This document shows, one piece after another, positions 6,596 through 56,111 of a stretch of 64,000 nucleotides of DNA. The number at the start of each line of letters is the position of its first letter. The stretch's first letter is position 1. Below the pieces are notes generated by a model. The model was not told where the DNA came from and made no database searches. It saw only the letters and a list, made by a program, of their open reading frames with translations. Origin of the DNA: Syncephalis fuscata S228 (lineage: Eukaryota; Fungi; Zoopagomycota); the NCBI GenBank assembly GCA_025786725.1, contig JAHLTZ010000001.1, positions 372,001 to 436,000 of the forward strand, written 5' to 3'. The translations under genes were made by a program, and so were the position numbers.

Positions 6596-9500
6596 CTACA
6601 TAATGACAGCTTGTTGGCTATTTGCTTCACCAAGCAAAGTAGGATTATTTTGACTGGCAAATGAAGCGGCACCCGTTTGACTAAAATCAAACTGAGCTGT
6701 ATTGATTACGGTAATTACGGGCGAGACCCATTCGTCGTAGCTTGTCTCGCTTCTCATATCAGAGAAAATACTACAAACGAGCAATCGGATATAGTATTTT
6801 CCTGGCAATGCCTGTTTTACAGGACCATCAACCTGGCCAAATGCTGATGCCATTTGAATGTTGCCGTCCCAGAAGCCAACATTATTGCCTTCTATACCTG
6901 CGCCGCTTTGCTCGACTTGTTTATAGTCAAAGTTGGGCATGTAACCAAGCACCTTTTTTGTATTGGCATCGAGGATTTGGGCCAAGACACGCATGCTAGG
7001 ATGTGCCAAACGGAACACAAACATAGGTCTCTTATCAACATCAATAGCAAGACTGTCGCCACTCCAATCGATAGAGTTGACTCCTTTTACTAATTGCCCA
7101 ACTTTGGGTGCAAATTTACCGCTTTGAATCATTGGAATGGCATTCATATCGCCGAAATAAGACTGGTAAACCATTTGACGAATGATCTTTCGTCCATTAA
7201 GTTTATCTACAATCGTACAGCGAATATAGCCGCTATACACGTAGAATTCATTTGGATTAAGACCTCGTGGCGGTGACACGGTCACGTCAATTTCTTTATA
7301 CATTGAGGGAGGACTTGATGAATCGTCGCTCGACTGGGTCATTTGATTCTCCTTAATAGTGAATGATGATTCGGACAGTTTGACTTTTGCTTTAGCATTG
7401 CTATAATATGGCTCCACTTCCTTGTGATTCTTCCACTTGGAGACAGTCACGGCACCAAAGTGTTCTAAACTGGCCCGTCCAGTGACATTGCTGATTCGAA
7501 TATTAAACTTGAAACTATTAACCGTACTTTCATCGTTGGTGAGGGGGAAAGTTCGAACTGGATTGGTAATAATAGCATCGCGATAGTTGATATAATTTGA
7601 ATCCCTGGCTCTTACTCGGCCTACACCTTGTCGAATGGTCGGGATAATAGCATTTTCGTCAAGTATCCCGTCCATCCATTTGGGTGCCTTTACCATGGTG
7701 CCAGTCTGCAAGATAGCATCTCTGAAGGCAGCAACCGTTTCGTTTGGCGATAGGCCGGCAAACGTGGATGCAATCATACCAGCAGCTAGACCACTAATGT
7801 GTGGTGCAGCCATACTTGTACCACTGAGTGTTTTCCAGCTACCGAGTGCCACAGGATAAGTGCTAATAATGAATCCGCCAGTAGCAGTAACTTCTGGTTT
7901 TACTTGTCTAAGATCAATTGATGGACCCCAAGACGAATATTGATAGATAGAATCCGAATTGGGATTGTCTAGACGAACTCGCTCGCGTTGCCATATTATG
8001 GTTGGTGGAGATGATTTTCTCTTTTTAAGATATCTTCGCAGATTATTGCCAGTATCGATATCGACCGCAATAACTGGAATATTTATTCCGGTGGAGTTGG
8101 TATCCAATTTGTCCATAGAGCCAACTGTATCGTGGATAATAACACCAGCTGCGCCGGTTTTTTGTGCATTAAGAATCTATCAATACAGTATTAATATAAT
8201 GTAAAGTTTCACGCCATTCGACCGCTTACCTTTACCGAAAATTCACATTCACCTCGATCTAGAATAACAAATGAGTTGGTATAGTTTCCAGTGAAGCTAC
8301 TACAGCCATTTTGCATATCTGGATCATCATTGGCTATATCAATAACCTTCCATCTGTCGTTCTCGCGTACTTTTACAAAATTCGAGGCCGAATATGCTGA
8401 ATGAACAATAAATGATTAGAACACTGTCTTGCATTAACTAAAGTTACTTACGGAATTGCATTTTGTTTTGATTACCAGAAAGCATAAATATATTGGCTGA
8501 AATTCGATTAGAATCGACTGCAGCAACGGCAATTACACCTGCTGCCGTTGCTGGAGAACTAATACCAAACATGCCATTCATACCATCATTGCCCGCAGAT
8601 GCTACAATAATAATACCTCGCTCGACTAGAAATTGCGCCATACGTGATTCCGGAGAGCTGGGCCAATTCTTCTTGAAACCCAACGATAGATTAATCACTT
8701 GCATGCCATCCTGGGCGGCCTTTTCCATAGCAGCTAAAAAGACCTGAACACCACCAACACCTTGACAGCCTAATACACGATAGGCACCAATACGAGCCTT
8801 AGGTGCCAGTCCAGTAAAATTTGATGCTTCACCGGCAATAATACCGGCCACATGTGTACCGTGGCCATAGCACGTATCCATTGGGTCAGGACGTGGCTGT
8901 GGCTTATTCCTACCGTTGTAATTATTGCCAACAAAGTCGTATCCCCATCCAATTTTGCAATCACCACCAAAACAACCACCAAGTGCTGGATGATTATAAT
9001 CGACACCCGTATCAACGATACCGATCTTTACACCTTCCCCTTGTGAGCCGGTGTTATAGACTTGTGGCTTTAGACCTTTGAGGTCTCCACCGTTACTAAG
9101 GATACTTTTTTCTTTTTTTGCTCGACGTTCCAGTAGCGGCCTCTTTGCCCGACCACCCGTATTGCCAATGCCACCATTCGCATCTTCTTCTACAACAATA
9201 GATGGTGCTTGAATTAATCCCTAATAATAACAATAACAACAATTGTTAAATTATAATTTACATTTTGACTACCAATAGTAATTACCGTGGGCCAAATGTT
9301 TTTGACAATGTCCAAAGAAGCCAGTCCTTGGACATTTTGGCAATTGTCATCAAACTCAACAGACAGTCCATTCATACCAATAGCGTACGTGTGTTGTACA
9401 GTTACACCGCTGATCTTTTTGGCTTGAACTAGAAACGCATCACGCTGCATTTGTGCCTCAGTAGTTTCTGGCTTCGCCATTAACTCAACAATATATGCAC

Positions 9501-20027: not shown

Positions 20028-23000
20028 ATGAATAGTTCAGATAATATAAATAAGCGAGATAGTATAATGGCCACCAATTCTAGTCCTCTCTATTAAATGA
20101 CCACCAGTCTAAGAAGCGACGTACCAATGAAGCGACACGACAAGCCAGTCGAAGTCAATCGCTTGGTCCTTCGTCATTTGAACTTGATCTAGCCAATGAG
20201 CCCAGCGATATTCCAGGTAGGTATAGTATTAGTATACCACAGTGTCATATAACTATTCTAATCTATTGTCTATCTATCTATCTATTATATTATATTGTAA
20301 TAGTGAATAGTCGTAGTTTATGGGCTCGTGCTCCTGTTCCAACACTTGATACAAATACTGATGCTTTAAGTAAGTTAAATAACTTGTAGATATTACTATA
20401 GATATCTAATAAATTACATATCATAAATATACATGTTACTATTTAGTATTTCAACAACTTGAAGTAGATGATGTACTCGACATGGCATCTGGTCAACCGG
20501 TTGTTCGTCTTTATGGTATTACTATGGTAATGATACTCAATCTATATAGATATAGATACATATATACTAATAGTGTATCAATTAGAATGGTAATAGTGTA
20601 TTATGTCATGTTACTGGATATCTTCCCTACTTTTACATGCCGGCACCAATTGGTATAACTCATAATGACTACCAGGATTTGAAAAAGCATTAGAGGTGAG
20701 TAGTTGTGTATTTGTAGTAAAGTATATTAAAACTATGACTATTACACCATAGATTGCTTTAGGAGAACGACAAAAGAGTATTGAAAAACTTGAACTTGTA
20801 CTTAAAGAAAATATCATGGGATTTCACAATAATGAAAAGACTACATTTCTTTGTATTACAGTACGTCAACCAAAGATGATTGCTCCATTACGTCATATCC
20901 TTGTTATTATTACATTATAGCCTATAGATTATAAATATAAATATAGATATAATCCTTAATTGTTATTGAAATACGTATTTTAGAAGCTGGATTTGTTTAT
21001 GAAGGATTCCGTGTATTTGCCGGTCATAGTTTTGAAAGCAATTTAGAATATACACTACGATTTATGGTGGATACTCAGGTAAGTCCATTATTATGTAGGC
21101 TATAATGGATTATTAATATTTGCTATAGATGATGGGGGCTAGTTGGATTGAACTGCCAGCTGGACACTATCAATTATGCTCCAATCTATCATCCAGTTGT
21201 CAGATTGAAGTAAAAATAGCGTATGTATAATAATAGTAATATAGCATAACATATAATAGTGTAATAACTTTATTATTAGATTTGAGAGTATTAAAAGTCA
21301 TGCTCCTGAAGGAAAATGGCAGGATATTGCACCATTACGTATTCTCAGTTTCGATATTGAATGTGCTGGTCGTAAAGGTGTATTTCCTGAACCGAAAATA
21401 GATCCAGTTATTCAAATTGCCAATGTTATATCTATCCATGGTAAATAGCATTCTGTGTAAATGTTGTACCTTGATATATAACAGTGATTTATAGGGAAAA
21501 CCAAGCCATTAATACGAAATGTATTTACACTTAATTCATGTGCCAGTATTGCCGGTGCAGATATTCTATCTTATACAGATGAAGCAGTGCTACTTGAAGC
21601 ATGGAAAGATTTTGTAACAGAGGTATATTTACATGACAATAGATAATAGTATACTCTATATTGACAACGTGACTAATAGGTGGATCCAGATGTGGTCATC
21701 GGTTATAATACTACCAACTTCGATTTCCCTTATTTGTTGGATCGTGCTGCTCACTTAAACATAGCACGATTCCCATTTCTTGGTCGTATTCAAACAGTGC
21801 GCACTAAGGCCAAAGATACAATATTTGCTTCTAAAGCATTTGGAACACGCGAAAACAAAGCTATCAGTATCCTTTTTATATTATAATGCAACATAACAGC
21901 AGTGATATCCGATACAAATGACTGCACTATTATAGACTTGGATGGCCGTATTCAATTGGATATTCTTCAAGTTATGCAACGCGACTACAAGTTAAGATCT
22001 TACACGCTTAATTCTGTTTGTTCTCAATTCCTTGGTAAGTTATAGATTGTACTAATTAACACGATTAATACTTTAATTACTGCTATATAGGAGAACAAAA
22101 GGAGGATGTACATCATTCGATTATTACCGATCTACAAAATGGCAATGATGAGACACGTCGGCGTTTAGCCGTCTACTGTTTAAAGGTTTGTATTAATAGC
22201 TATATTATAATTTACGTTAATAATTTACATGAATCATTAGGATGCTTATTTGCCACAACGTCTTATGGATAAACTGATGTGCTTGATCAATTATATTGAA
22301 ATGGCTCGTGTTACGGGCGTTCCATTCAACTATTTGTTGACTCGTGGACAACAAATTAAGGTTATTTCTCAACTGTATCGAGAGGCTCATAAAGAGAATT
22401 TAGTTATACCAGCGATGAAATCAGAAGGTAGTTAATCAATAGTTTTATAACAGTTTTTATACATATATATATATATATGTATACTAATTGATATATTATA
22501 CTAGGTGGGGATGAACAATATGAAGGTGCTACGGTTATTGAGCCAAATAAAGGCTACTACGATGTTCCAATTGCCACTCTCGATTTCAGTTCTTTGTATC
22601 CATCGATTATGATGGCCCATAATCTTTGTTATACAACACTGTTGGCCCCTAATAAAGTGGAACAATATGGACTTGTTTTGGACGAAGACTATGCGCGAAC
22701 ACCGAATGGCGGTAGGCTATATATTGCAAAAATGGCATGAAATAGACTATAACTATTTAATATGTAGATTTATTTGTTAAGACAAAACAGCGAAAAGGAT
22801 TATTGCCAACCATTTTGGAGAATTTATTGGCTGCTCGTAAACGAGCCAAGTCTGACTTGAAGAATGAAACAGATCCATTTAAACGAGCTGTATTAGATGG
22901 ACGACAATTTGCTTTAAAGGTAAGCAGTTAGCTGATTAAACAATAAGGCTTGGAGCATCTGCTACAATAGTAGCTAATTGATCATATTATTTGAATAATA

Positions 23001-24825
23001 GATTAGTGCCAATTCAGTATATGGCTTTACTGGTGCCACTATAGGCAAATTGCCCTGTTTGCAAATATCCTCCAGTGTTACAGCATACGGACGAGAGATG
23101 ATCAATGCAACAAAGGAGGCAGGTTATAAAAGTATAATGTCTAATAAATATTAATGTAAATTATAGGAAGTAGAAGCACAGTTTAATATCAAGAATGGTT
23201 ATGCACACGATGCACGAGTCATTTACGGCGATACTGATTCAGTTATGGTAAATTTTGGAGTTAAGACACTACCAGAGCTATGAAATTAGGCAAGTGTTCG
23301 TTGTAATGAATATAATAAATAGATATGTTAAACAAATCGTTATGCTATTAGGCCAAGAGGCAGCCGAATTCGTCACACATAAATTCATTCGACCAATCAA
23401 CTTAGAATTGAAAAAGTCTACTTTCCCTACTTGTTAATTAATAAGAAGCGATATGCCGGGCTTTATTGGACACGTCCTGATAAATATGATAGGATGGATA
23501 CAAAGGGCATTGAGGTAAGCTATACGATAGTATTTATTGTCTAGTTAACTAATGTGCATAACTATATAGACAGTACGACGTGATAATTGTCAATTAGTTC
23601 AAATTGTCATTGATACATGTCTACGCAAAATTCTTATTGATCGTGATGTATCAGGAGCAGAAGCGTAAGCGTTAAGCATTTACAAATATAAGTACTAAAT
23701 AATAATAATAAAACTAAATAATGTTATATAGATATACAAAGCAAATTATCGCAGATTTATTACAAAATAAGATTGATATGTCGCAATTAGTAATTACGAA
23801 GGCATTAAGTAAAACGGGTAAGTATATAATTAATATGAGCAATACATAATTAATACTTGTATACTATTTGTAATAGAATATGCGGGTAAACAAGCACATG
23901 TCGAATTGGCTGAACGAATGCGCAAAAGAGATGCTGGTAAGCTATAAACTAGCAATTGTTGTCATTTATCAAGTGTTGTAATAATGTATGAATAGGTTCT
24001 GCACCGAATTTGGGTGATCGAGTTGCCTATGTTATTATAAAGGGTGGCAAAGGTAGTTATATTAATTAAATGATAGAAGTAAAGAATACAACAACTAAAT
24101 ATTAATGATATAGGCGCGGCAGCTTATGAAAAGTCGAAGATCCACTTTATGTACTGGATAATAATGTTCCTATTGATACCAAGTATTATTTGGAAAATCA
24201 ATTAGCCAAACCATTATTGCGTATATTTGAACCAATTCTTGGTGATAAGGCTGAATCATTATGTAGGATCATTGTAGTAGTTTATGATATACTACAATTA
24301 ATACTAATAATTACTACTAATAGTGAATGGTGAACACACAAGAACAATATCAGTGGCAGCACCTTCTATTGGTGGTTTAATGAAGTTTGCCGTACGCACC
24401 GCTACTTGTCTAGGCTGCAAGACACCACTGCGTAATAATGGTAATGAAATACACTTGATCAACCAAATAGACCAATCTAATCTGTACTGCTATTATTACT
24501 AGCATCGGCTGTATGTGACCATTGTGCACCACGTCTATCAGAAATATACCAAAGACAGGCAAGTAACATGTATACATATATGTAGTATTTATTAATGCTT
24601 ATTAACTAACTAATCAATACAATCATAGTTGGACAAATGAACGATTTAGAAATGCGATTTGCCCGATTATGGACACAATGCCAACGCTGTCAAGGTAGTT
24701 TACATCAAGATGTTCTTTGTACAAGTCGTGATTGTCCCATCTTTTATATGAGAAAGAAGTCACAGAAAGATGTTGAAGACATTCAAAGACACTTACTCGA
24801 TTTACACATGAATGGTAGACTTTAA
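20028..24825 (+). CDS. POL3: DNA polymerase delta catalytic subunit, highly intron-rich
   Basis: [47 protein letters not shown] and KKRYAG; C-terminal CysA/CysB motifs (CLGC, CDHC, CQRCQG...CTSRDC). Confidence 0.98.
20895..20974 (+). other. U12-type (minor spliceosome) AT-AC intron in POL3
   Basis: Donor ATATCCTTG, branch point TCCTTAAT at 20953-20960, acceptor ...AATAC. Removal gives the in-frame sequence MIAPLR-R-ILEAGF. Confidence 0.92.
21867..21935 (+). other. GT-AG intron with a U12-type 5' splice site in POL3
   Basis: Donor GTATCCTTTT. Removal gives ENKAI-N-LDGR. No clean U12 branch point is visible. Confidence 0.65.
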
Positions 24826-24898: not shown

Positions 24899-26288
24899 TT
24901 ATGCATCTGATACGGTTTGAATAATTTCAGAGTGACGGAATTGCCAGTAACGTTCACGAATACGATCGTGTTTCTCGGCCAATTCGTTACAAGCCTATCG
25001 TTTAATGGTTAACTATTAGTATACCCTTTAAATAGCTGCATTGCATCTACTTGCCCAAATAGCTTTGTCATAGCGCTCTTGTGGGCTATTCTCCGAGTAA
25101 TCTTGATAGATTTGAACAAAGAATGAAAGAAGTGGTACAGATATACACGGTCTTTCAAGTAGATTATAAACTACCGGTTCTATTTGTGGTAAAAGTAATT
25201 CAGGTCGATGACGAATGGTTCTAATAAATGAATTAATACAAAAATTATTATAATATTCATTATAAACGTACCCAATTAAATAATTCCATGAGCTTTCATT
25301 ACTAGGTGCCAATTCAATCTTTTTCAATGTAAAACTATAATGTATGTTAATAATAGTGTTACCAACAATAGTACTATCTACTTACTCCACCTCTTCTTCC
25401 AATTGAGCATCGGTCACTGTGCCTGGTTTAAAGTGTATACAGAAATAGCGCTGATTCCATGCTGAATTATTACGAATATCATCGTCGATTAACCGTGTAA
25501 CAAATGCCACTTCATTCTCCCATAAATCAAATGTTTTAATGATCCATTGACTAAATAGAATATTAGTAAGTTACTATGGTTATTATTATTATTATTATTG
25601 TCATTACTTACCGATATGACCAAGCATGAAAGTTCTTTGCATCTTTTTCAAGAGCATCTTCAATAAATGTCAATTCACCACTTGCATCCCCCATATGATC
25701 AATAATGACTTGACGATGATGCCTATTAATAATTAACACACTATTTATAAATAATTATAATTGATTTTACCATAATTGATAACATTTTGGATTTTCATCG
25801 GCCATTTCTTTTAAATAAGCCAATTCCTTTTGTAAGTCGCATTGATGCCTAGTAGAATATCTTTACGATAAAGCCTATTAATTAATTAATCAATTAATAA
25901 TATTTATTAATTATCGGTATATAAAAACCTTTAACCAACCAGCACTTACCATATAGTATAATGACCAGGATTCATAGAAATAATATCCTCGGTAAGAGCA
26001 AGTGTCCGGTCACTTAGTTCCCTCTTGGCTGATACAGCCCGGAAATAGTCCATGCGCTTTTATCTGTGTATATAGTATTAGAAAACACTATTTAATAGAC
26101 TATTATACTATAGTAAACTTACATTCTTGCGAATAAGCAATAGGACAAACGGGATCAATTCCGTCATCTTGGGCTATAGGAGTAACATCGCTCCATTCTT
26201 CTCGTTCACTATAAGGAATCCACGCTTCTGTAGACTAGATGTACAAGATATTTAGTAGATATCTATTGCTGTGCTATTTACCTACCAT
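24899..26288 (-). CDS. RAM2: Protein farnesyltransferase/geranylgeranyltransferase-I alpha subunit
   Basis: WSDVTPIAQDDG, PIAYS, MDYFRA, KNFHAWSYR, DIRNNSAWNQR and APSNESSWNYL; ends HDRIRERYWQFR...DA*. The first coding exon appears to be the ATG alone. Confidence 0.95.
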
Positions 26289-35497: not shown

Positions 35498-36772
35498 ATT
35501 TTGGACAAACAAACACGATACAGCGTGTTTTGTCGACTAGTGTTTAGATGAGATACTAATAGTCAATGTTTCGTCCTTCTAGTCACAGTGGCTTGATAAC
35601 AAGGATGACTATAACAATACTACAGATAATTAAAAAACAAAAGGTAAAGATGACGACGCACAAATGCGATGTTAATAAAGAGGAAGAGCAGTATCAAATA
35701 TGATGAGTTTAGCGTAAACGAAAGAAAGACGAAAGGCTCTTGATGATTGGGTGACCGTGAGGCACACAATGGATACATCACCTTTTAGTAGTACGTTTAT
35801 ATAGTGATTTGTTAATTAAGAATGTTTATTTCACACAATAGGATAGATAAACGGTAGTTATATGTTGGTTTTGTTAATAAAGAACATTTCGATATGTTTA
35901 TCTATTATAATGGCAATTATTTAATAAATTAAACATTATAAATAGTTGCTGAACACTGGAAAAGTGATTTATTGTACGTATGCTGTTCTAAAAATACCAA
36001 GGACAGAGTTGGCAATAAATTTAACTAATTTAACAAGTTCAGTTTTCCAAGTCAAAGTATGTGATATAAATATGAATAATAACAATAATAATACCTCATA
36101 TTAAGATTTATATACTATGGCAGTAACAAGAGTAGTAGTTTAAATAAATAACAAGTAATTTAAGGTAACAAGTAAAAATTTATTAAATGGCAATTCTAGT
36201 CACACGCACTAACAATATAGTGTTACTTGTTGGTACCAGTGTCGAGCAATTGATAATAGAGATGCTCATAGGCATTTGTCTTATATTGTTGTTGTTTGCA
36301 AAATACGCAATTCAATAAATTCTAGTATTACCTACTAATCTCGAGAAACGGTTTGTACTAGCATGTATACAGTGTTGGTTTAGAACGCGTAATGTAATAA
36401 TAAAAACAACTGTGACACTGTTCAGTTACTACTGGCCACACATCAAATACAAGAATAATTATGTTGCGATCACACTTTCAATGTGACCTCTGCACATGTT
36501 TTTAGCCTATACTATGTGGTTTGCTACTTCATAAAATATCTTTACTGTTAGCCAATAGTAATATAAATATACTTTAATTATTATTTAAAAATCCTAGTTT
36601 AAAAGCTAATGATAACAATATAGCAAGCATCAAAAACAGAAATTAATATCGCTTATATGATATTATTGTTAACATAATAACACATAATCGGTGATTACCA
36701 ATACATTCAAATAAGACATTTTGCTATTTATTAATATTAAATATTAATATAAATATTTAACAAATGCAGTGT

Positions 36773-38206
36773 TTATTTCTGCATACCAATTGTGTCCAAA
36801 TGACTACCAGTTGTTGCCGCTGCTTCATGCAGTAACATACGTGCCGCAATATAAGTGTCTGGTCGAATAAGATATACGGCGTGTTCGTTTAAACTTGTGC
36901 ATTGATACATGTCTGCCATTGTCGTGTTGTCGTATCGTTTGCCTTGATTTATGTCGACATACACTGGCGCATCGTTGAACTTTTTGTTTAACTGTGCTAT
37001 TAGCAATGTTGTTTGTGCAGATAATTCTGCTGCATTGCTGCTACTTTGTGTACCATGAATCACAAATGCCGGTAATACTGCCGACTTGTATGCTTTGAAT
37101 GTAGTCATCAAGTTTTTTAGTTGATTCACAGTGTCTAGTGGCAGTTGGCATGCGTTTGCTTCTACAGCGTTGTTATCAATAGTAGCCTTGCGGCCATCAA
37201 TAAATATGATGGCTTTGTATGATCCATTATTCTGTGCATAAAAGTGACGAGTACGCGTATTGGTGCAGTTGGCTGGATCGATGACTGACAGTCAATGGCG
37301 CGCGAACCTGGTACGCAGACAGGATCCGAAAACAAGTTAAACGGAAACCAATTAAACGAAATCCATGATGAGGCGGCCTTCGACCATGCTGGGGTATCGG
37401 CAAATATACCGCCATAACTAGATAGCGGGTATTTGATGCGAAGTTGTGCTGTTTTTTCCATCCGCGAGCGTAGAATAAATGAAGGTAAATATTGCATTAG
37501 CTGCATTATTCGTAAAAATATATTTGATTTTTTAGGATCTCTAATAAGCGAAAGATTGCTCCCTGAAAATTGTATAACGTCGTCAGCAACAGGAATTCGT
37601 TCTGTTGCGTATGACTTTAACAAATCCATTTGGCATACCCGTGATAGACCATGCCTATCTTCCATGCAATGTTTTCTGCATCTTGTAAGCCAGTATTCAT
37701 GCCTTGACCACCAGTTGGGCTGTGTACATGTGCAGCATCACCACAAATAAATACACGACTATCGTCTGATATAAACTTTGAAGCACGGCGCTCATTTATA
37801 TTAAATATCGAAAATGATAGTATACGTGGCTTTCCCAGATCGAATGGTAGAAAGCGGCGTTTAATGACACCGATAAGATTTTCAATTGCTAAGTCAGATG
37901 ACTCAGTATCCCAGCCCGTAAACATACGATATTTGTTTCCAATATGTGCACGGATACTGCCTATAAATCCATCTGGGCTCATAGAAAAGCTAAAATGACT
38001 TAACAATATTATATTACGTAGTTATTACACCCACCATGCTACCGGCAACCAATTCACATCAACTTCAACATCAAACACGGCCATACGATAGTCAGCAAGC
38101 TGTCCGTTAAATTGAGCGCCTATAGCCTTGCGTATATTACTGTGTCCGCCGTCACATCCAACCATATAAGGTGTCTGGCACGTTATAACTTCATTTGAAT
38201 CGACTT
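36773..38206 (-). pseudogene. 5'-truncated inverted copy of the neighbouring FAD monooxygenase
   Basis: Reverse complement of ~39192-40627. Lacks the start codon and GxGxxG exon, has two 1-bp deletions (~37627 and ~37288) and three amino-acid substitutions near the C-terminus, and keeps the intron. Confidence 0.8.
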
Positions 38207-38691: not shown

Positions 38692-40627
38692 ATGCACAAA
38701 ATGAATAAAAAACAACCTGTCATTATTGTTGGTGCCGGACCTGTCGGTCTTATGACCGCTCTAGTACTTGCTGAAGCTGATGTTCCAGTAGAAATTTATG
38801 GTTAGTTATTCGAGTCAAATATACATATCAGTTAATTTGGATATCCATTTATTAGAGCGTAATTATAAGCAAACCACTGAATGGCGTGCGACTGCCATAC
38901 ATTCTCGTACTATTGAACTGCTTGCCCGTTATGGGCTCACAGAAAAGCTATTAGGGGTTGGTAACCCATTTAATGGATTTCGTTTTCTTAAAGATGGCGA
39001 ATACTGGCCAGGCATGTCTATTGAGTTTATTCGTAGCGAATATCCTATGATGCTGGGATGTGGTCAAGACAGTACAGAAAATATTCTTCATCAGCGGCTA
39101 AAAGATTTAGATGTACATGTAAAATGGGGATGGGAATACATTTCGCACGAATTAGTCGACGATAATAAGCAAGTCAGTATTAAATTTAAACAAGTCGATT
39201 CAAATGAAGTTATAACGTGCCAGACACCTTATATGGTTGGATGTGACGGCGGACACAGTAATATACGCAAGGCTATAGGCGCTCAATTTAACGGACAGCT
39301 TGCTGACTATCGTATGGCCGTGTTTGATGTTGAAGTTGATGTGAATTGGTTGCCGGTAGCATGGTGGGTGTAATAACTACGTAATATAATATTGTTAAGT
39401 CATTTTAGCTTTTCTATGAGCCCAGATGGATTTATAGGCAGTATCCGTGCACATATTGGAAACAAATATCGTATGTTTACGGGCTGGGATACTGAGTCAT
39501 CTGACTTAGCAATTGAAAATCTTATCGGTGTCATTAAACGCCGCTTTCTACCATTCGATCTGGGAAAGCCACGTATACTATCATTTTCGATATTTAATAT
39601 AAATGAGCGCCGTGCTTCAAAGTTTATATCAGACGATAGTCGTGTATTTATTTGTGGTGATGCTGCACATGTACACAGCCCAACTGGTGGTCAAGGCATG
39701 AATACTGGCTTACAAGATGCAGAAAACATTGCATGGAAGATAGGCATGGTCTATCACGGGTATGCCAAATCGGATTTGTTAAAGTCATACGCAACAGAAC
39801 GAATTCCTGTTGCTGACGACGTTATACAATTTTCAGGGAGCAATCTTTCGCTTATTAGAGATCCTAAAAAATCAAATATATTTTTACGAATAATGCAGCT
39901 AATGCAATATTTACCTTCATTTATTCTACGCTCGCGGATGGAAAAAACAGCACAACTTCGCATCAAATACCCGCTATCTAGTTATGGCGGTATATTTGCC
40001 GATACCCCAGCATGGTCGAAGGCCGCCTCATCATGGATTTCGTTTAATTGGTTTCCGTTTAACTTGTTTTCGGATCCTGTCTGCGTACCAGGTTCGCGCG
40101 CCATTGACTGTCAGGTCATCGATCCAGCCAACTGCACCAATACGCGTACTCGTCACTTTTATGCACAGAATAATGGATCATACAAAGCCATCATATTTAT
40201 TGATGGCCGCAAGGCTACTATTGATAACAACGCTGTAGAAGCAAACGCATGCCAACTGCCACTAGACACTGTGAATCAACTAAAAAACTTGATGACTACA
40301 TTCAAAGCATACAAGTCGGCAGTATTACCGGCATTTGTGATTCATGGTACACAAAGTAGCAGCAATGCAGCAGAATTATCTGCACAAACAACATTGCTAA
40401 TAGCACAGTTAAACAAAAAGTTCAACGATGCGCCAGTGTATGTCGACATAAATCAAGGCAAACGATACGACAACACGACAATGGCAGACATGTATCATTG
40501 CACAAGTTTAAACGAACACGCCGTATATCTTATTCGACCAGACGCTTATATTGCGGCACGTATGTTACTGCATGAAGCAGCGGTAACAACTGGTAGTCAT
40601 TTGGACACAATTGGTATGCAGAAATAA
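38692..40627 (+). CDS. Group A FAD-dependent monooxygenase (aromatic/phenol hydroxylase type), 3 exons
   Basis: IVGAGPVGL, GCDGGHS, GDAAHVHSPTGGQGMNTGLQDA and C-terminal LIRPDAY. Confidence 0.95.
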
Positions 40628-41171
40628 ACACTGCATTTGTTAAAATTATAAATATTAATATTAATAATAGCAAAAAAATAATAATATTTGTCAGCAATAC
40701 CCAGTTGTAAACAAATGCTAAAGTACATTAATTAAGAAACTTAGTTTATTCATACACTTTAAGACAGGTATACTGGCCAAATTATAAATTAACTTGCATT
40801 AAGGTATAATGCTATTTGCTTGCTCTTATTAATACTTATTATTATAAAAACAAATAACTACGTTTCTTACTTGTAATACTAAGTGTGCAACTGTTTTAGG
40901 CCATTTAGCAGAAATAAACATTTATTACTTGCATTAGAAGGAAAGGTAATAGTTTACTGTCGTTAAATCTGATAAATCCTACTAGTATATTGTACCTTAA
41001 TGTAATGTTGCTAGTAGTATTTATTACACTGTAAAGATACGCCATAATGGAATTTTATGATTGCGCACAGTCTGTATTATAATTTAATCAAAAAGGGTGC
41101 AATGTTCAGTGATTTACTCTACAATTTCAATCTACCAAAAACTAAGTAATATAATTAATTATTAAATTATC

Positions 41172-41687: not shown

Positions 41688-44600
41688 ATGGCCTCGTTGG
41701 AAGAAAGCACTTCTAGACTTGAAAGCCAAAACGATAGTCAACAATACTCTAATAATCCAAGTTCACAAAATCCCCCGGCCGTTAATTTTGGAGAGCCATC
41801 CAATATTGACACAGAGGAGGCTAAGGTTAAATATGCCGCGTTAAGTAAAAGCTTTAGCCATGCCCCTCCCGATTCTTCACCAGCACAAGCTGAGGAGGGA
41901 GAAACCACTGGAAAAATTGATTTAGAAGCCTATCTTAACAATCGTCGAGATGAAGCTCTACGTCTTGGTATTCGCAGAAAAAAACTTGGTGTTAGTTTTC
42001 GTGATTTAGTTGTTATTGGCGACTCGGCTACGCGTGAACATATCCAAACCTTTTGGTCACCCTTCTATCATGCAGCCCGATCATTGGGAGCCATGCTTCA
42101 TATTGTTTCCAAGCCACCTCCTGGTGAGCCGTGGAAATTTTACACGGAATCACTGGGTTGTGTGCCGACGGTGAAATGCTTTTGGTGCTAGGAAAGCCAG
42201 GATCTGGATGTTCAACGTTTTTACGCGTGCTGGCCAACCAGCAGCGTATTTACAAAGACATTCGTGGGTCTATCTCTTATAGCGGCATTCCTGCAAAAGA
42301 AATGGACCAATATAAGGGAGAATTGCTTATAATCAAGAAGATGACGTCCATTATCCTAAGGTGGGTTTGATTATAATATTTAATATTAGATATCCAACTA
42401 ATGAACATCTTCAACAGCTGACAGTGAAGAATACACTTGAATTTGCTTGCAAATGTCGCACTCCAGATAAGAAGATAGCTAATACATCGAAAGAATTTGT
42501 AAACGAAATGGTCAATACTGCGTGCGAGGTTTTTGGCTTAACTCATTGTAAAGATACACAAGTTGGTAATGAAATGATTCGTGGTGTATCTGGCGGTGAG
42601 CGCAAACGTCTCTCGATTGCAGAGCAAATTGTCTCGATGTCAACTATTGGTATTTGGGATGGAAGTACAAAAGGTTTAGATGCTTCCACTGCATTGGACT
42701 TTGTTCGATCGTTACGAATTGCAACAGATACGCTTAACCGTACTACGATTGGAACATTTTATCAAGCAAGTGAAAACATATATGAAGTATTCGATAAAGT
42801 CTTGGTGCTTGATCAAGGTTACTGTCTTTATTTTGGCCCACAAAGCAAGCAAAAGCATATTTTGAAGAGCTTGGTCTTGAATGTCCTAAACGCATGACTA
42901 CGCCAGACTTTCTTACGGGAGTAACACAGCCACGGGAACGTCATGTAAAAAATGGATTTGAAGACACGGTTCCTAAAACAGCCGAGGAATTTGCAAATAG
43001 TTTTCGGAACAGTTCTAATTATACAGTAATTCTTAATGAGCTAGCCGAATTCAGCGAAAATCTGGAGCAGGAACGACCCGATGTGGAGTTTAGAGAAGCA
43101 GTCGTGCAAGCGCAGCATAAAGGTGTTAAGCGCCGATCACCTTATGTAACGCCATATAAGTATCAGTTAGCGGCCTGCCTGGTGCGAGAATTTCATTTAA
43201 TGTATGGAAACCGCTTTGAAATCATATCGCATTTTGTGTTTAATGCTGTCATGGCCGTCATTGTTGGATCTCTTTTCTACAAGTTACCTTTGAATGGGTC
43301 CGGCACTTTTACTCGTGGTGGTGCACTGTTTGTGTCGGTTCTTTTTAATGCACTTTCATCTCAATCGGAATTATCAAAGACATTTTATGGTCGCGGCGTT
43401 CTTTACAAGCACAAAGCACTTGCGCTGTATCATCCATCAGCATTTTATATTGCCCAAGTAATTGCAGACATTCCACGTATCTTGCTATCAGTTATTATTT
43501 ACGCTGTTCTTATTTATTGGATGTCAGAATTCTACTCGAGTGCAGCTGCATTCTTCACATTTGTTTTTGGTCTTTTTGTCATGGCTATGACTATGACTGC
43601 GCTATTTCGTATGTTTGGCGCTATTTCTCCAAACATTCAAGTAGCAAATATCATATCTGGTATTTTTCTACTAAGTTTTCTACTCTACACTGGCTACATT
43701 ATTCCATTAAGCAGTATGAAAGGATGGTTTATTTGGATTCGCTACATTAATCCGCTGGCCTGGGGCTTTGAAGCATTGCTCCTTAATGAGTATAAAAACT
43801 TGATTTTCAGATGTACGCCGCCTTACCTGGTTCCATTTGGTGCAGGCTATGATGACCTGCGCTTTAAAGCTTGCACTATTGCAGGTGCACGTCCAGCAAG
43901 CGACACAGTGTCTGGACCAGCCTATCTGAGTGCATATTTAGATGCCCACGTACCTATGCTTTGGCCAGACATTGTTATTACCATTGGATTCTGGTGTCTG
44001 TATGTCGGGGCAACAATGTTTTTTATTGAAGTGCTCGAGTTTGGCAAAGGTGGATACACAACCAATGTGTATAAATCAAATACGTCTCATAGAAACCGTT
44101 TTGGATATACTGTTGTTTCTCCCGAAGAGACACAGTCCATCGGCTCGGAGCAATCTACCGACATCAAGTCCAACTCGTCTCGAGGAAAACAAGCAGCGCT
44201 AAGTCATGACGAAATACCTATATTTTTTTGGAACAGAATTAATTATGTTGTTCCAGTCAAGACAGATCCTAATGGTAAACGGCGACTTCTTAATGGCGTT
44301 TCAGGCTGGGTACGCACTGGCGAGCTGATTGCATTAATGGGAAGTAGCGGTGCGGGAAAAACCACATTGCTTGATGTATTGGCACAGCGTAAATCGGAAG
44401 GCTCAGTAAGTGGTGACATTCGATTGCAAAAACATGTACCAAGTACCGATTTTCGGCTACTTACCGGCTATTGTGAGCAAATGGATGTACACAATCCGTA
44501 TTCTACCGTGCGGGAAGCACTTCACTTTTCCGCTAATTTACGTCGGCCATCAAGTGTGACCCAGAGAGAAAAGAATGACGATGTACAGACTATAATTCGA

Positions 44601-46423
44601 CTGTTGGAACTCGAGAACATTGAAAATGCCATGATTGGCCATCCTGAAACAGGCAAAGGCATTTCTGTTGAGGAGCGCAAACGAGTCACCATTGCTATGG
44701 AGCTGATTGCCAAACCAACCATTCTGTTCTTGGACGAGCCAACATCTGGCCTTGGTATGTTATCTATGTTGCACTATTAACCAAATAATTTATACATTTG
44801 CCATTTGCTACAGATGCACAAGCATCATTCACTATCATATCGCTTATTCGGAAATTGGCTGATCATGGACAAGCTATCGTGTGTACCATCCATCAGCCAT
44901 CAGCTATTTTGTTCGAGCACTTTGACAAGCTATTGCTACTGGCACGTGGTGGTAATACTGTTTATTTTGGCAAGCTGGGCAAAGACTCTCACGAACTTAT
45001 TTCGTACTTTGAACGCAACGGTGCGCCTGAGTGTCCTCGCACTGCCAATCCAGCTGAATACATTCTCGATGCTGTGGGTGCCGGTGTTTCAGCGACAGCC
45101 TCTCAGGACTGGCCAGCCATATGGCGTCAATCTCCGGAGGCACAAGAAGTACAAGAATCTTGTAGTCGTTACACTGCCGATTGCGAACAAGCAATAGCTG
45201 ATGAGGAGGCATCTGCAGAACACCATGATCGACATAGAGATAGTAAAGCAGCCTACTATACAAACAGTTACATGCAATGCAAAATTGTTACTAAACGAAT
45301 GATTCTCAACTATTGGCGCCAGCCAGACTACAACTTTGGTCGTTTACTCAACCAAATTATTGTAGCCTTAATTCTAGGCTTTACCTTTTATCGACTAGGC
45401 TACGATAAATCCGATTTAATGAATCGGTCGTTTGCTTTGTTCAAACAACCGTGCTTGGTGTTTTAGTCATTAACGATGTGATGCCGCAGTTCTTTCAGCA
45501 ACGAATTCTATTTGTACGTGAAACATCAGCAGGCTACTATTCATGGTGGGTGTTTACCACCGCCATGATAATAGCTGAATTACCGTATCTTTTGTTAAAT
45601 GCTACAATGTTTTTTGTTATCAACTACTACTTGACCAATTACAATCCTAAGGGATCGCGAGCTATATATTTTTATTTAATGTACGTTGTCTTTATATTTT
45701 TCGCAGGTACACTTGGCCAAGCATTGCCGCTATGACACCTAATCTTCAAGTAGCCATGTTGGCGGCACCTTTTTCTCTGCAATGATGGGTATTTTTAGCG
45801 GTGTTATTATACCCAATGCGGCAATGGTAACATTCTGGCGTCGATGGATGTATTGGGTTGATCCATACCATTATGTAATTGAGGTAAGTTTTATACTTGT
45901 AATGTAGGCATATTTAACAACCAGATTTTAGGGACTTTTGACTAATGACTTACACGAAAAACGGCTTTATTGCTACAACAACCAATTCAACATACTTCAA
46001 CCACCACCAGGCCAGACATGTGGCGCATATATGGCCAGATTTCTGGCTGCCAACACTGGGTACATCGACAATCCATCGGCTCGTTCGGATTGCCGTTATT
46101 GCCAGTACCGAGTTGGCGATGAATTCTATGCGGCATACGACTGGAGTTTCGTGCATCGCTGGCGTAACTTTTGCATCATTATCGGCTTTATTGTCGCCAA
46201 CATAGTAATAATGTTTGTAGCCATGAGTCGTTTTAAAACCAAAAAGCAAAAGTAAGTTGGTACAGGTTACAAATGTATTTACTAATGATATATTCTACAG
46301 AATTTCAAAAATATCGTCTACTGAAGAAGAGGCATATCAAGAGGTTGGCCCGGATATACATCCAAATGAAGATAGAGAAATGACAAATACAGAGATGTAT
46401 TATCAAAGAAAATTTATTCCTTA
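41688..46423 (+). CDS. Full-size ABCG/PDR-type ABC transporter, (NBD-TMD)2 topology
   Basis: LGKPGSGCST, VSGGERKRLSIAE, WDGSTKGLD, GSSGAGKTTLL, SVEERKRVTI, LDEPTSGLD and CTIHQPS; two TM blocks; several frameshifts. Confidence 0.96.
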
Positions 46424-55581: not shown

Positions 55582-56111
55582 TGTGTAGGCAAAAATCGCT
55601 TATTTCAGTAAATAGCTTAAGCTTCTTATGGTGTGTGGAGTGATGGGAAAGAGTAGTAGAAGAGCGTGTAATGATGGGATATAATATCGACAAAAAGATA
55701 CCGAGGTTTTATAGTCAGGCTGAGTAATACAGCATGTTGCACAGTATGGTTGTTATGGTGTGTGTCATATGTTTTATTATCGAGTAAACAATCAGCAATG
55801 TTTTGCCTGATAAGAATGCTCAAATAAGGAGTGGACATTCGACTAAACAATGATTTAGCACATTAATAAATAAGGATATGTTTATAAACAGTAATAGTTT
55901 AAAGTTAAATCTGACATTTTTGATATTTCTTATGATTGCTCACAGAACTACTTTGTTGTAAGTTCAATATAATTTACATAGCAATCAATTGATTGTAATT
56001 AGATGTTGTACAAACTATCGCAGTCTACTGATTATTGATCACAGAAATGATCAATACTGTAAATTTTAAATAAAAATTGCTATAGAATGCTATAGAAGGA
56101 TAATATCAGCA

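Follow-up and report, generated by a model that had tools for sequence, protein, structure and literature searches.

A probable AT-AC intron of the U12 type in the Pol delta gene of a zoopagalean fungus, Syncephalis fuscata

The DNA polymerase delta gene and its surroundings

The stretch of Syncephalis fuscata DNA analysed here, 64 kb in length and referred to as the window throughout, carries the gene for the catalytic subunit of DNA polymerase delta (Table 1). S. fuscata is a parasite of moulds and belongs to the Zoopagales within the Zoopagomycota. The exons of the gene were translated and searched singly, with the residues at each junction judged by eye, and the identity of the gene was confirmed exon by exon. 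Pfam matches to POL3_N, DNA_pol_B_exo1, DNA_pol_B and zf-C4pol were obtained across the gene, and the solved structures closest to the exons were those of yeast and human Pol delta, with E values of ~1e-28 versus 1e-10 for other B-family polymerases. The exons are collinear with the orthologue from a close relative, Thamnocephalis sphaerospora (P0287), and almost all Pol delta intron positions are common to the two species. Identity to the Thamnocephalis protein is 77–100% for most pieces from position 21281 on and ~50–63% for the N-terminal pieces. One intron of the gene, at 23290–23351 of the window, is of the GC-AG kind (donor GCAAGT), and its removal is required for a Thamnocephalis-like reading of an 11-residue stretch. 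Judging from ORF translations only, the neighbouring minus-strand sequence at 25028–26053 resembles a protein prenyltransferase alpha subunit. The neighbour of the Thamnocephalis gene is likewise prenyltransferase alpha-like (L001 1–365; Pfam PPTA in the locus table), which suggests local synteny.

Several features of the window bear on the quality of the assembly. Apparent −1 frameshifts were found in the Pol delta exons at ~20682–20687, 23277–23278, 23408–23409 and 24136–24137. One lies in a run of five A, and the others fall at a lone G or TT where the frame needs one more base, as in contracted doublets or triplets. The Thamnocephalis protein reads straight across all four sites, and from the sequence they look like indel errors of the assembly. 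A PDR-type ABC transporter is represented by two overlapping ORFs (42361–42897 and 42894–44780), apparently one exon split by a one-base shift at ~42850–42897. An inverted repeat of ~1.46 kb, with arms at 36747–38206 and 39192–40653 that are 99–100% identical and separated by a 985-nt spacer, duplicates part of a FAD-monooxygenase gene; its arms can be divided into three blocks, two of which are separated on the right arm by a gap of one base. The palindromic duplication may be real or may be an artefact of the assembly. A deposited protein marked as partial, P0011, terminates inside the repeat, and the large ORF at 39392–40624 is identical at 142 of 142 residues to a Syncephalis fuscata protein.

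Table 1. Features of the Pol delta locus in S. fuscata, in window coordinates
Feature	Position	Strand	Remarks
DNA polymerase delta catalytic subunit gene (POLD1/Pol3 orthologue)	20067–24825	+	~26 short exons; start approximate; stop codon 24823–24825
Exon upstream of the AT-AC interval	20753–20894	+	ends ..IAPLR + C (first base of the split Arg codon); weak POL3_N match
Probable U12-type AT-AC intron, 80 nt, phase 1	20895–20974	+	motifs, spacing, frame; orthologous introns at L001 2409–2499 and L002 2312–2381
Predicted 5' splice site ATATCCTT (U11 / U6atac recognition)	20895–20902	+	8/8 match to the extended donor consensus; ATATCC invariant in three species
Predicted branch-site motif TCCTTAAT (U12 recognition)	20953–20960	+	likely branch A at 20958 or 20959
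3' terminal AC	20973–20974	+	AC then G invariant in three species
Exon downstream of the AT-AC interval	20975–21078	+	starts GT, the last two bases of the split Arg codon, followed by ILEAGF
Rival in-frame GT..AG pair, 92 nt	20892–20983	+	would yield IAPL-Q-AGF
Second intron, probably U12-type; GT donor GTATCCTTT, AG end, 69 nt, phase 1	21867–21935	+	donor perfect; branch degenerate in S. fuscata

Splice signals and reading frame of the 80-nt interval

Non-consensus AT-AC introns were the first described members of the U12-type AT-AC class, and introns of this class depend on the U11, U12, U4atac and U6atac snRNAs for their removal. The original prediction placed such an intron in the Pol delta gene, describing an 80-nt interval with the U12 donor ATATCCTT, the branch motif TCCTTAAT 14 nt from the 3' end and an AC acceptor, and each of these elements was confirmed by reading the DNA directly. 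A U12-type branch site was taken as TCCTTRAY lying ~10–20 nt from the 3' end. The 14 bases that separate TCCTTAAT from the end of the intron are half purine and contain no long polypyrimidine tract, and the motif itself terminates in T, a position at which C is commoner. As the gene carries apparent one-base deletions in the assembly, single bases of the AT-AC intron may be wrong too. Continued into the interval, the upstream reading frame reaches a stop after 27 nt, indicating that the interval is not coding, while its excision joins the exons in phase 1 (C/GT; ..CGT C + GT ATT..) to give ..IAPLR-R-ILEAGF.

Taken singly, the two motifs occur in the window at random frequency: the donor motif has 6 matches versus 5.7 expected from shuffles, and the branch motif has 8 versus 7.9. 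When donor, branch site, a spacer of 6–16 nt and AC are required in that order, the composite occurs once, against an expectation of 0.03 per window from 300 first-order Markov randomisations, and this sole occurrence coincides exactly with the exon junction that homology demands. Three plus-strand matches to RTATCCTT are present in the window, two of them inside the Pol delta gene. Matches to RTATCCTT at 9098, 11091 and 62326, which lie in coding sequence, and at 55872, which is intergenic, were rejected as chance.

To place the junction on orthologous proteins, full-length Pol delta sequences from many lineages were gathered by single-exon and profile searches. The peptides of the flanking exons abut on these orthologues with exactly one residue, that of the split codon, between the exon ends. 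With the AT-AC interval removed, 24 residues separate two conserved anchors, which is the modal length in ~35 orthologues and leaves the alignment gapless and collinear, and the junction pattern ..AP.[KR]R.LE.GF agrees with these same ~35 sequences. In an AlphaFold2 model of a slice of the Actinia orthologue (pLDDT 90.8), the matching residues lie in a helix at 100–112 (slice numbering) and the exon junction maps to the middle of that helix. Both the length and pattern of the orthologue block and the modelled helix agree with the earlier claim that removal of the interval restores a conserved APxRRxLE helix.

The same site in other lineages and the competing readings

Comparing the intron position across POLD1 orthologues, which had been proposed as a check and was done at loci reached via deposited proteins, revealed AT-AC introns at the same codon and in the same phase in two other genera of Zoopagomycota. 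The intron of T. sphaerospora (L001 2409–2499) begins with ATATCCTTT, with CTTGAC lying 20 nt from its end, and that of Basidiobolus meristosporus (L002 2312–2381) opens with ATATCCAT, with CCTTCAC lying 9 nt from its end. The ATATCC donor start and the terminal AC are thus retained in Syncephalis, Thamnocephalis and Basidiobolus. When the three introns are aligned, invariance is seen at the C/ATATC donor, at the AC/G end, at a CTT within the branch region and in scattered single columns, with little beyond that; the remainder cannot be aligned, and GC content varies between the introns. For both relatives, the deposited proteins, P0287 for Thamnocephalis and P0303 for Basidiobolus, translate part of the AT-AC intron (L001 2405–2471 and L002 2332–2389, respectively), and their junction blocks measure 33 and 28 residues instead of 24. 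These spurious residues result from fitting GT-AG boundaries onto the AT-AC intron, which bears out the expectation that predictors restricted to GT-AG introns would mis-model this exon.

Outside these three genera, the site looks different. No intron was present there in 11 other lineages, including Spiromyces, Bifiguratus, Actinomortierella, Paraphysoderma, Piromyces, Phlyctochytrium, Sphaeroforma, Actinia and a cichlid. Among 80 Pol delta loci on metagenome contigs, ~55 of which had usable anchors, no intron was found at the site, and two of these loci (L031 and L034) have ordinary introns near it. The land plant Rhododendron has a 478-nt GT-AG intron (L012 3015–3492) at the identical codon. 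This intron shares with that of S. fuscata its position, phase 1 and its placement directly before I-L-[DE], but differs in its donor (GTAAGA), acceptor (CAG) and length, and is of the major (U2) type. The presence of a plant intron at the same codon and in the same phase indicates that the site is probably old.

The original prediction also held that the interval has no usable GT-AG boundaries, and this was overstated. A GT at 20892 keeps the frame when paired with an AG at 20982–20983 (92 nt) or at 20985–20986 (95 nt), and an ordinary U2-type intron with these boundaries would make the U12-like motifs coincidental. In a scoring matrix derived from the gene's 19 U2-type donors, the GT at 20892 reaches −1.0 bit versus a median of 6.0; U2 donors are nevertheless degenerate here, with 2 of the 19 accepted ones scoring as low, and boundaries of the same sort were adopted in the annotation of the orthologous Thamnocephalis junction. 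Against this, the GT-AG model deletes four conserved residues, reducing to 20 a block of 24 that is constant in ~35 orthologues, and would shorten a helix that is confidently modelled. Basidiobolus has no GT immediately upstream of its AT-AC donor and yet has ATATCC, so conservation of the GT alternative does not extend to that genus, and coincidence would have to supply a composite motif of which merely 0.03 are expected per window. We therefore consider a GT-AG intron at this junction quite improbable.

Two further readings are both very improbable in our estimation. The AT-AC intron could be excised by the major, U2-dependent spliceosome, as rare U2-type AT-AC introns do occur in other eukaryotes; such introns, however, have U1-compatible donors and lack a TCCTT branch motif near the 3' end, whereas the interval in S. 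fuscata has both U12 signals at the correct spacing and a donor, ATATCC, that is common to three genera. Alternatively, the interval could be non-functional, belonging to a decaying pseudogene or arising as an assembly artefact. The assembled Pol delta gene does have at least four apparent −1 frameshifts, and a full-length S. fuscata Pol delta protein was absent from the best 120 matches of a profile biased towards the S. fuscata sequence, probably because of these assembly frameshifts. All of the frameshifts, however, amount to the loss of one base in a short run of identical nucleotides or in what seems a contracted doublet, and none introduces a stop within the exon frame. Decay is also at odds with the 77–100% identity to Thamnocephalis of most exons from 21281 on and with the nearly complete sharing of intron positions; no second Pol delta copy was found, and the AT-AC intron itself is retained in other genera.

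We conclude, with a probability of roughly nine in ten, that 20895–20974 is a U12-dependent AT-AC intron in the Pol delta catalytic-subunit gene of S. fuscata. This reading is supported by the motifs and their spacing, the AC end, the restored frame and conserved helix, and the recurrence of these signals at the corresponding codon in two further genera of Zoopagomycota. The central claim of the original prediction accordingly stands: motifs, spacing, frame, collinearity and these two genera all support an AT-AC intron of the U12 type in Pol delta of an early-diverging fungus. Removal of a U12-dependent intron at this position would be expected to begin with joint binding of the U11/U12 di-snRNP, U11 at the donor and U12 at the branch motif, a step for which a polypyrimidine tract would be unneeded. 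The U4atac/U6atac.U5 particle would join next, and at the donor U6atac would take the place of U11. The branch A at ~20958–20959 would then attack the 5' junction, and ligation of the exons would produce CGT C/GT ATT, read as R-R-I.

A second U12-like intron and minor splicing in the Zoopagales

The Pol delta gene contains a second intron with U12-like signals, and its donor matches the U12 donor GTATCCTT at 9 of 9 positions. The best branch candidates in S. fuscata are TCCGATAC, which matches at 5 of 8 positions and lies 20 nt before the end, and a TGAC 13 nt before the end; this region is degenerate, so that the S. fuscata copy taken on its own ranks as a candidate U12-type intron. The Thamnocephalis intron at the same codon and in the same phase (L001 3506–3589) combines the donor GTATCCTTT with a perfect TTCCTTAAC branch site that lies 21 nt ahead of its AG, and on these sequence features the second intron is probably U12-type. 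The heptamer TATCCGA is found inside both the S. fuscata and the Thamnocephalis copies. No insertion was seen at the corresponding residues in Basidiobolus, the plant, Spiromyces, Bifiguratus, Creolimax, Actinia or the cichlid, and the contiguity of the DNA at this site was verified for Basidiobolus and the plant.

The AT-AC intron of S. fuscata resembles the U12 AT-AC introns of animals and plants in its donor ATATCCTT, in a TCCTTAA near the 3' end, in its AC terminus and lack of a long polypyrimidine tract, and in its location in an old informational gene. It differs from them in being very short (80 nt) and AT-rich, in a branch motif that ends in T, and in its zoopagalean fungal host. Dikarya lack minor introns, which are present in several early fungal lineages. 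In Basidiobolus they number 237–249 (PMC10639083; bioRxiv 10.1101/2022.10.12.511939), and minor snRNAs have been reported in Zoopagomycota (bioRxiv 10.1101/2022.10.12.511939). Like S. fuscata, Basidiobolus meristosporus and Rhizophagus irregularis are early-diverging fungi, and they carry tens to hundreds of minor introns (PMC10639083); the Basidiobolus Pol delta gene shares the orthologous AT-AC intron with S. fuscata. Basidiobolus is the only member of the Zoopagomycota named for minor introns in PMC10639083 and bioRxiv 10.1101/2022.10.12.511939, and no statement on minor introns in Syncephalis, Thamnocephalis or other Zoopagales was found in these two sources. A limited literature search with POLD1 and "minor intron" did not turn up Pol delta as a known minor-intron gene. 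Since Zoopagomycota were already known to keep minor introns, the finding in S. fuscata is sound but fairly ordinary.

From the conservation of the intron and the phylum-level literature only, we infer that S. fuscata has a working minor spliceosome. Within the 64-kb window, Rfam searches at the gathering threshold and at E ≤ 1 gave 0 snRNA matches, and no minor-spliceosome protein was found there. Given that Pol delta is essential and that its gene has another U12-like intron, a functional minor spliceosome is presumably required for its expression; this dependence would follow for a gene that is both single-copy and essential, which Pol delta is likely to be. It had further been suggested that the AT-AC intron could gate Pol delta expression, which we regard as speculation; a study of Rhizophagus reported no cell-cycle-regulated minor splicing in fungi (PMC10639083).

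A broader evolutionary scenario can be put forward tentatively, and we think it rather less likely to be right than wrong. The site of the AT-AC intron may be an ancient one that is shared with land plants and was ancestrally U12-type, with the AT-AC form kept only in Zoopagomycota, conversion to the major type in plants and loss elsewhere. Combined with a second intron, probably U12-type and specific to the Zoopagales, it might tie the replicative polymerase of these mycoparasites to the minor spliceosome twice over, which could help to explain why the machinery has been kept.

The Pol delta gene of S. fuscata adds a clear case of predicted minor splicing for the Zoopagales. It also has a practical consequence, in that the public Pol delta protein models of two related fungi contain spurious residues. 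With one U12-type intron that is very probable and a second that is probable, this essential replication gene would offer a convenient marker, both for RT-PCR assays of minor splicing in parasites that are hard to culture and for tracing the loss or conversion of minor introns across the early fungi.
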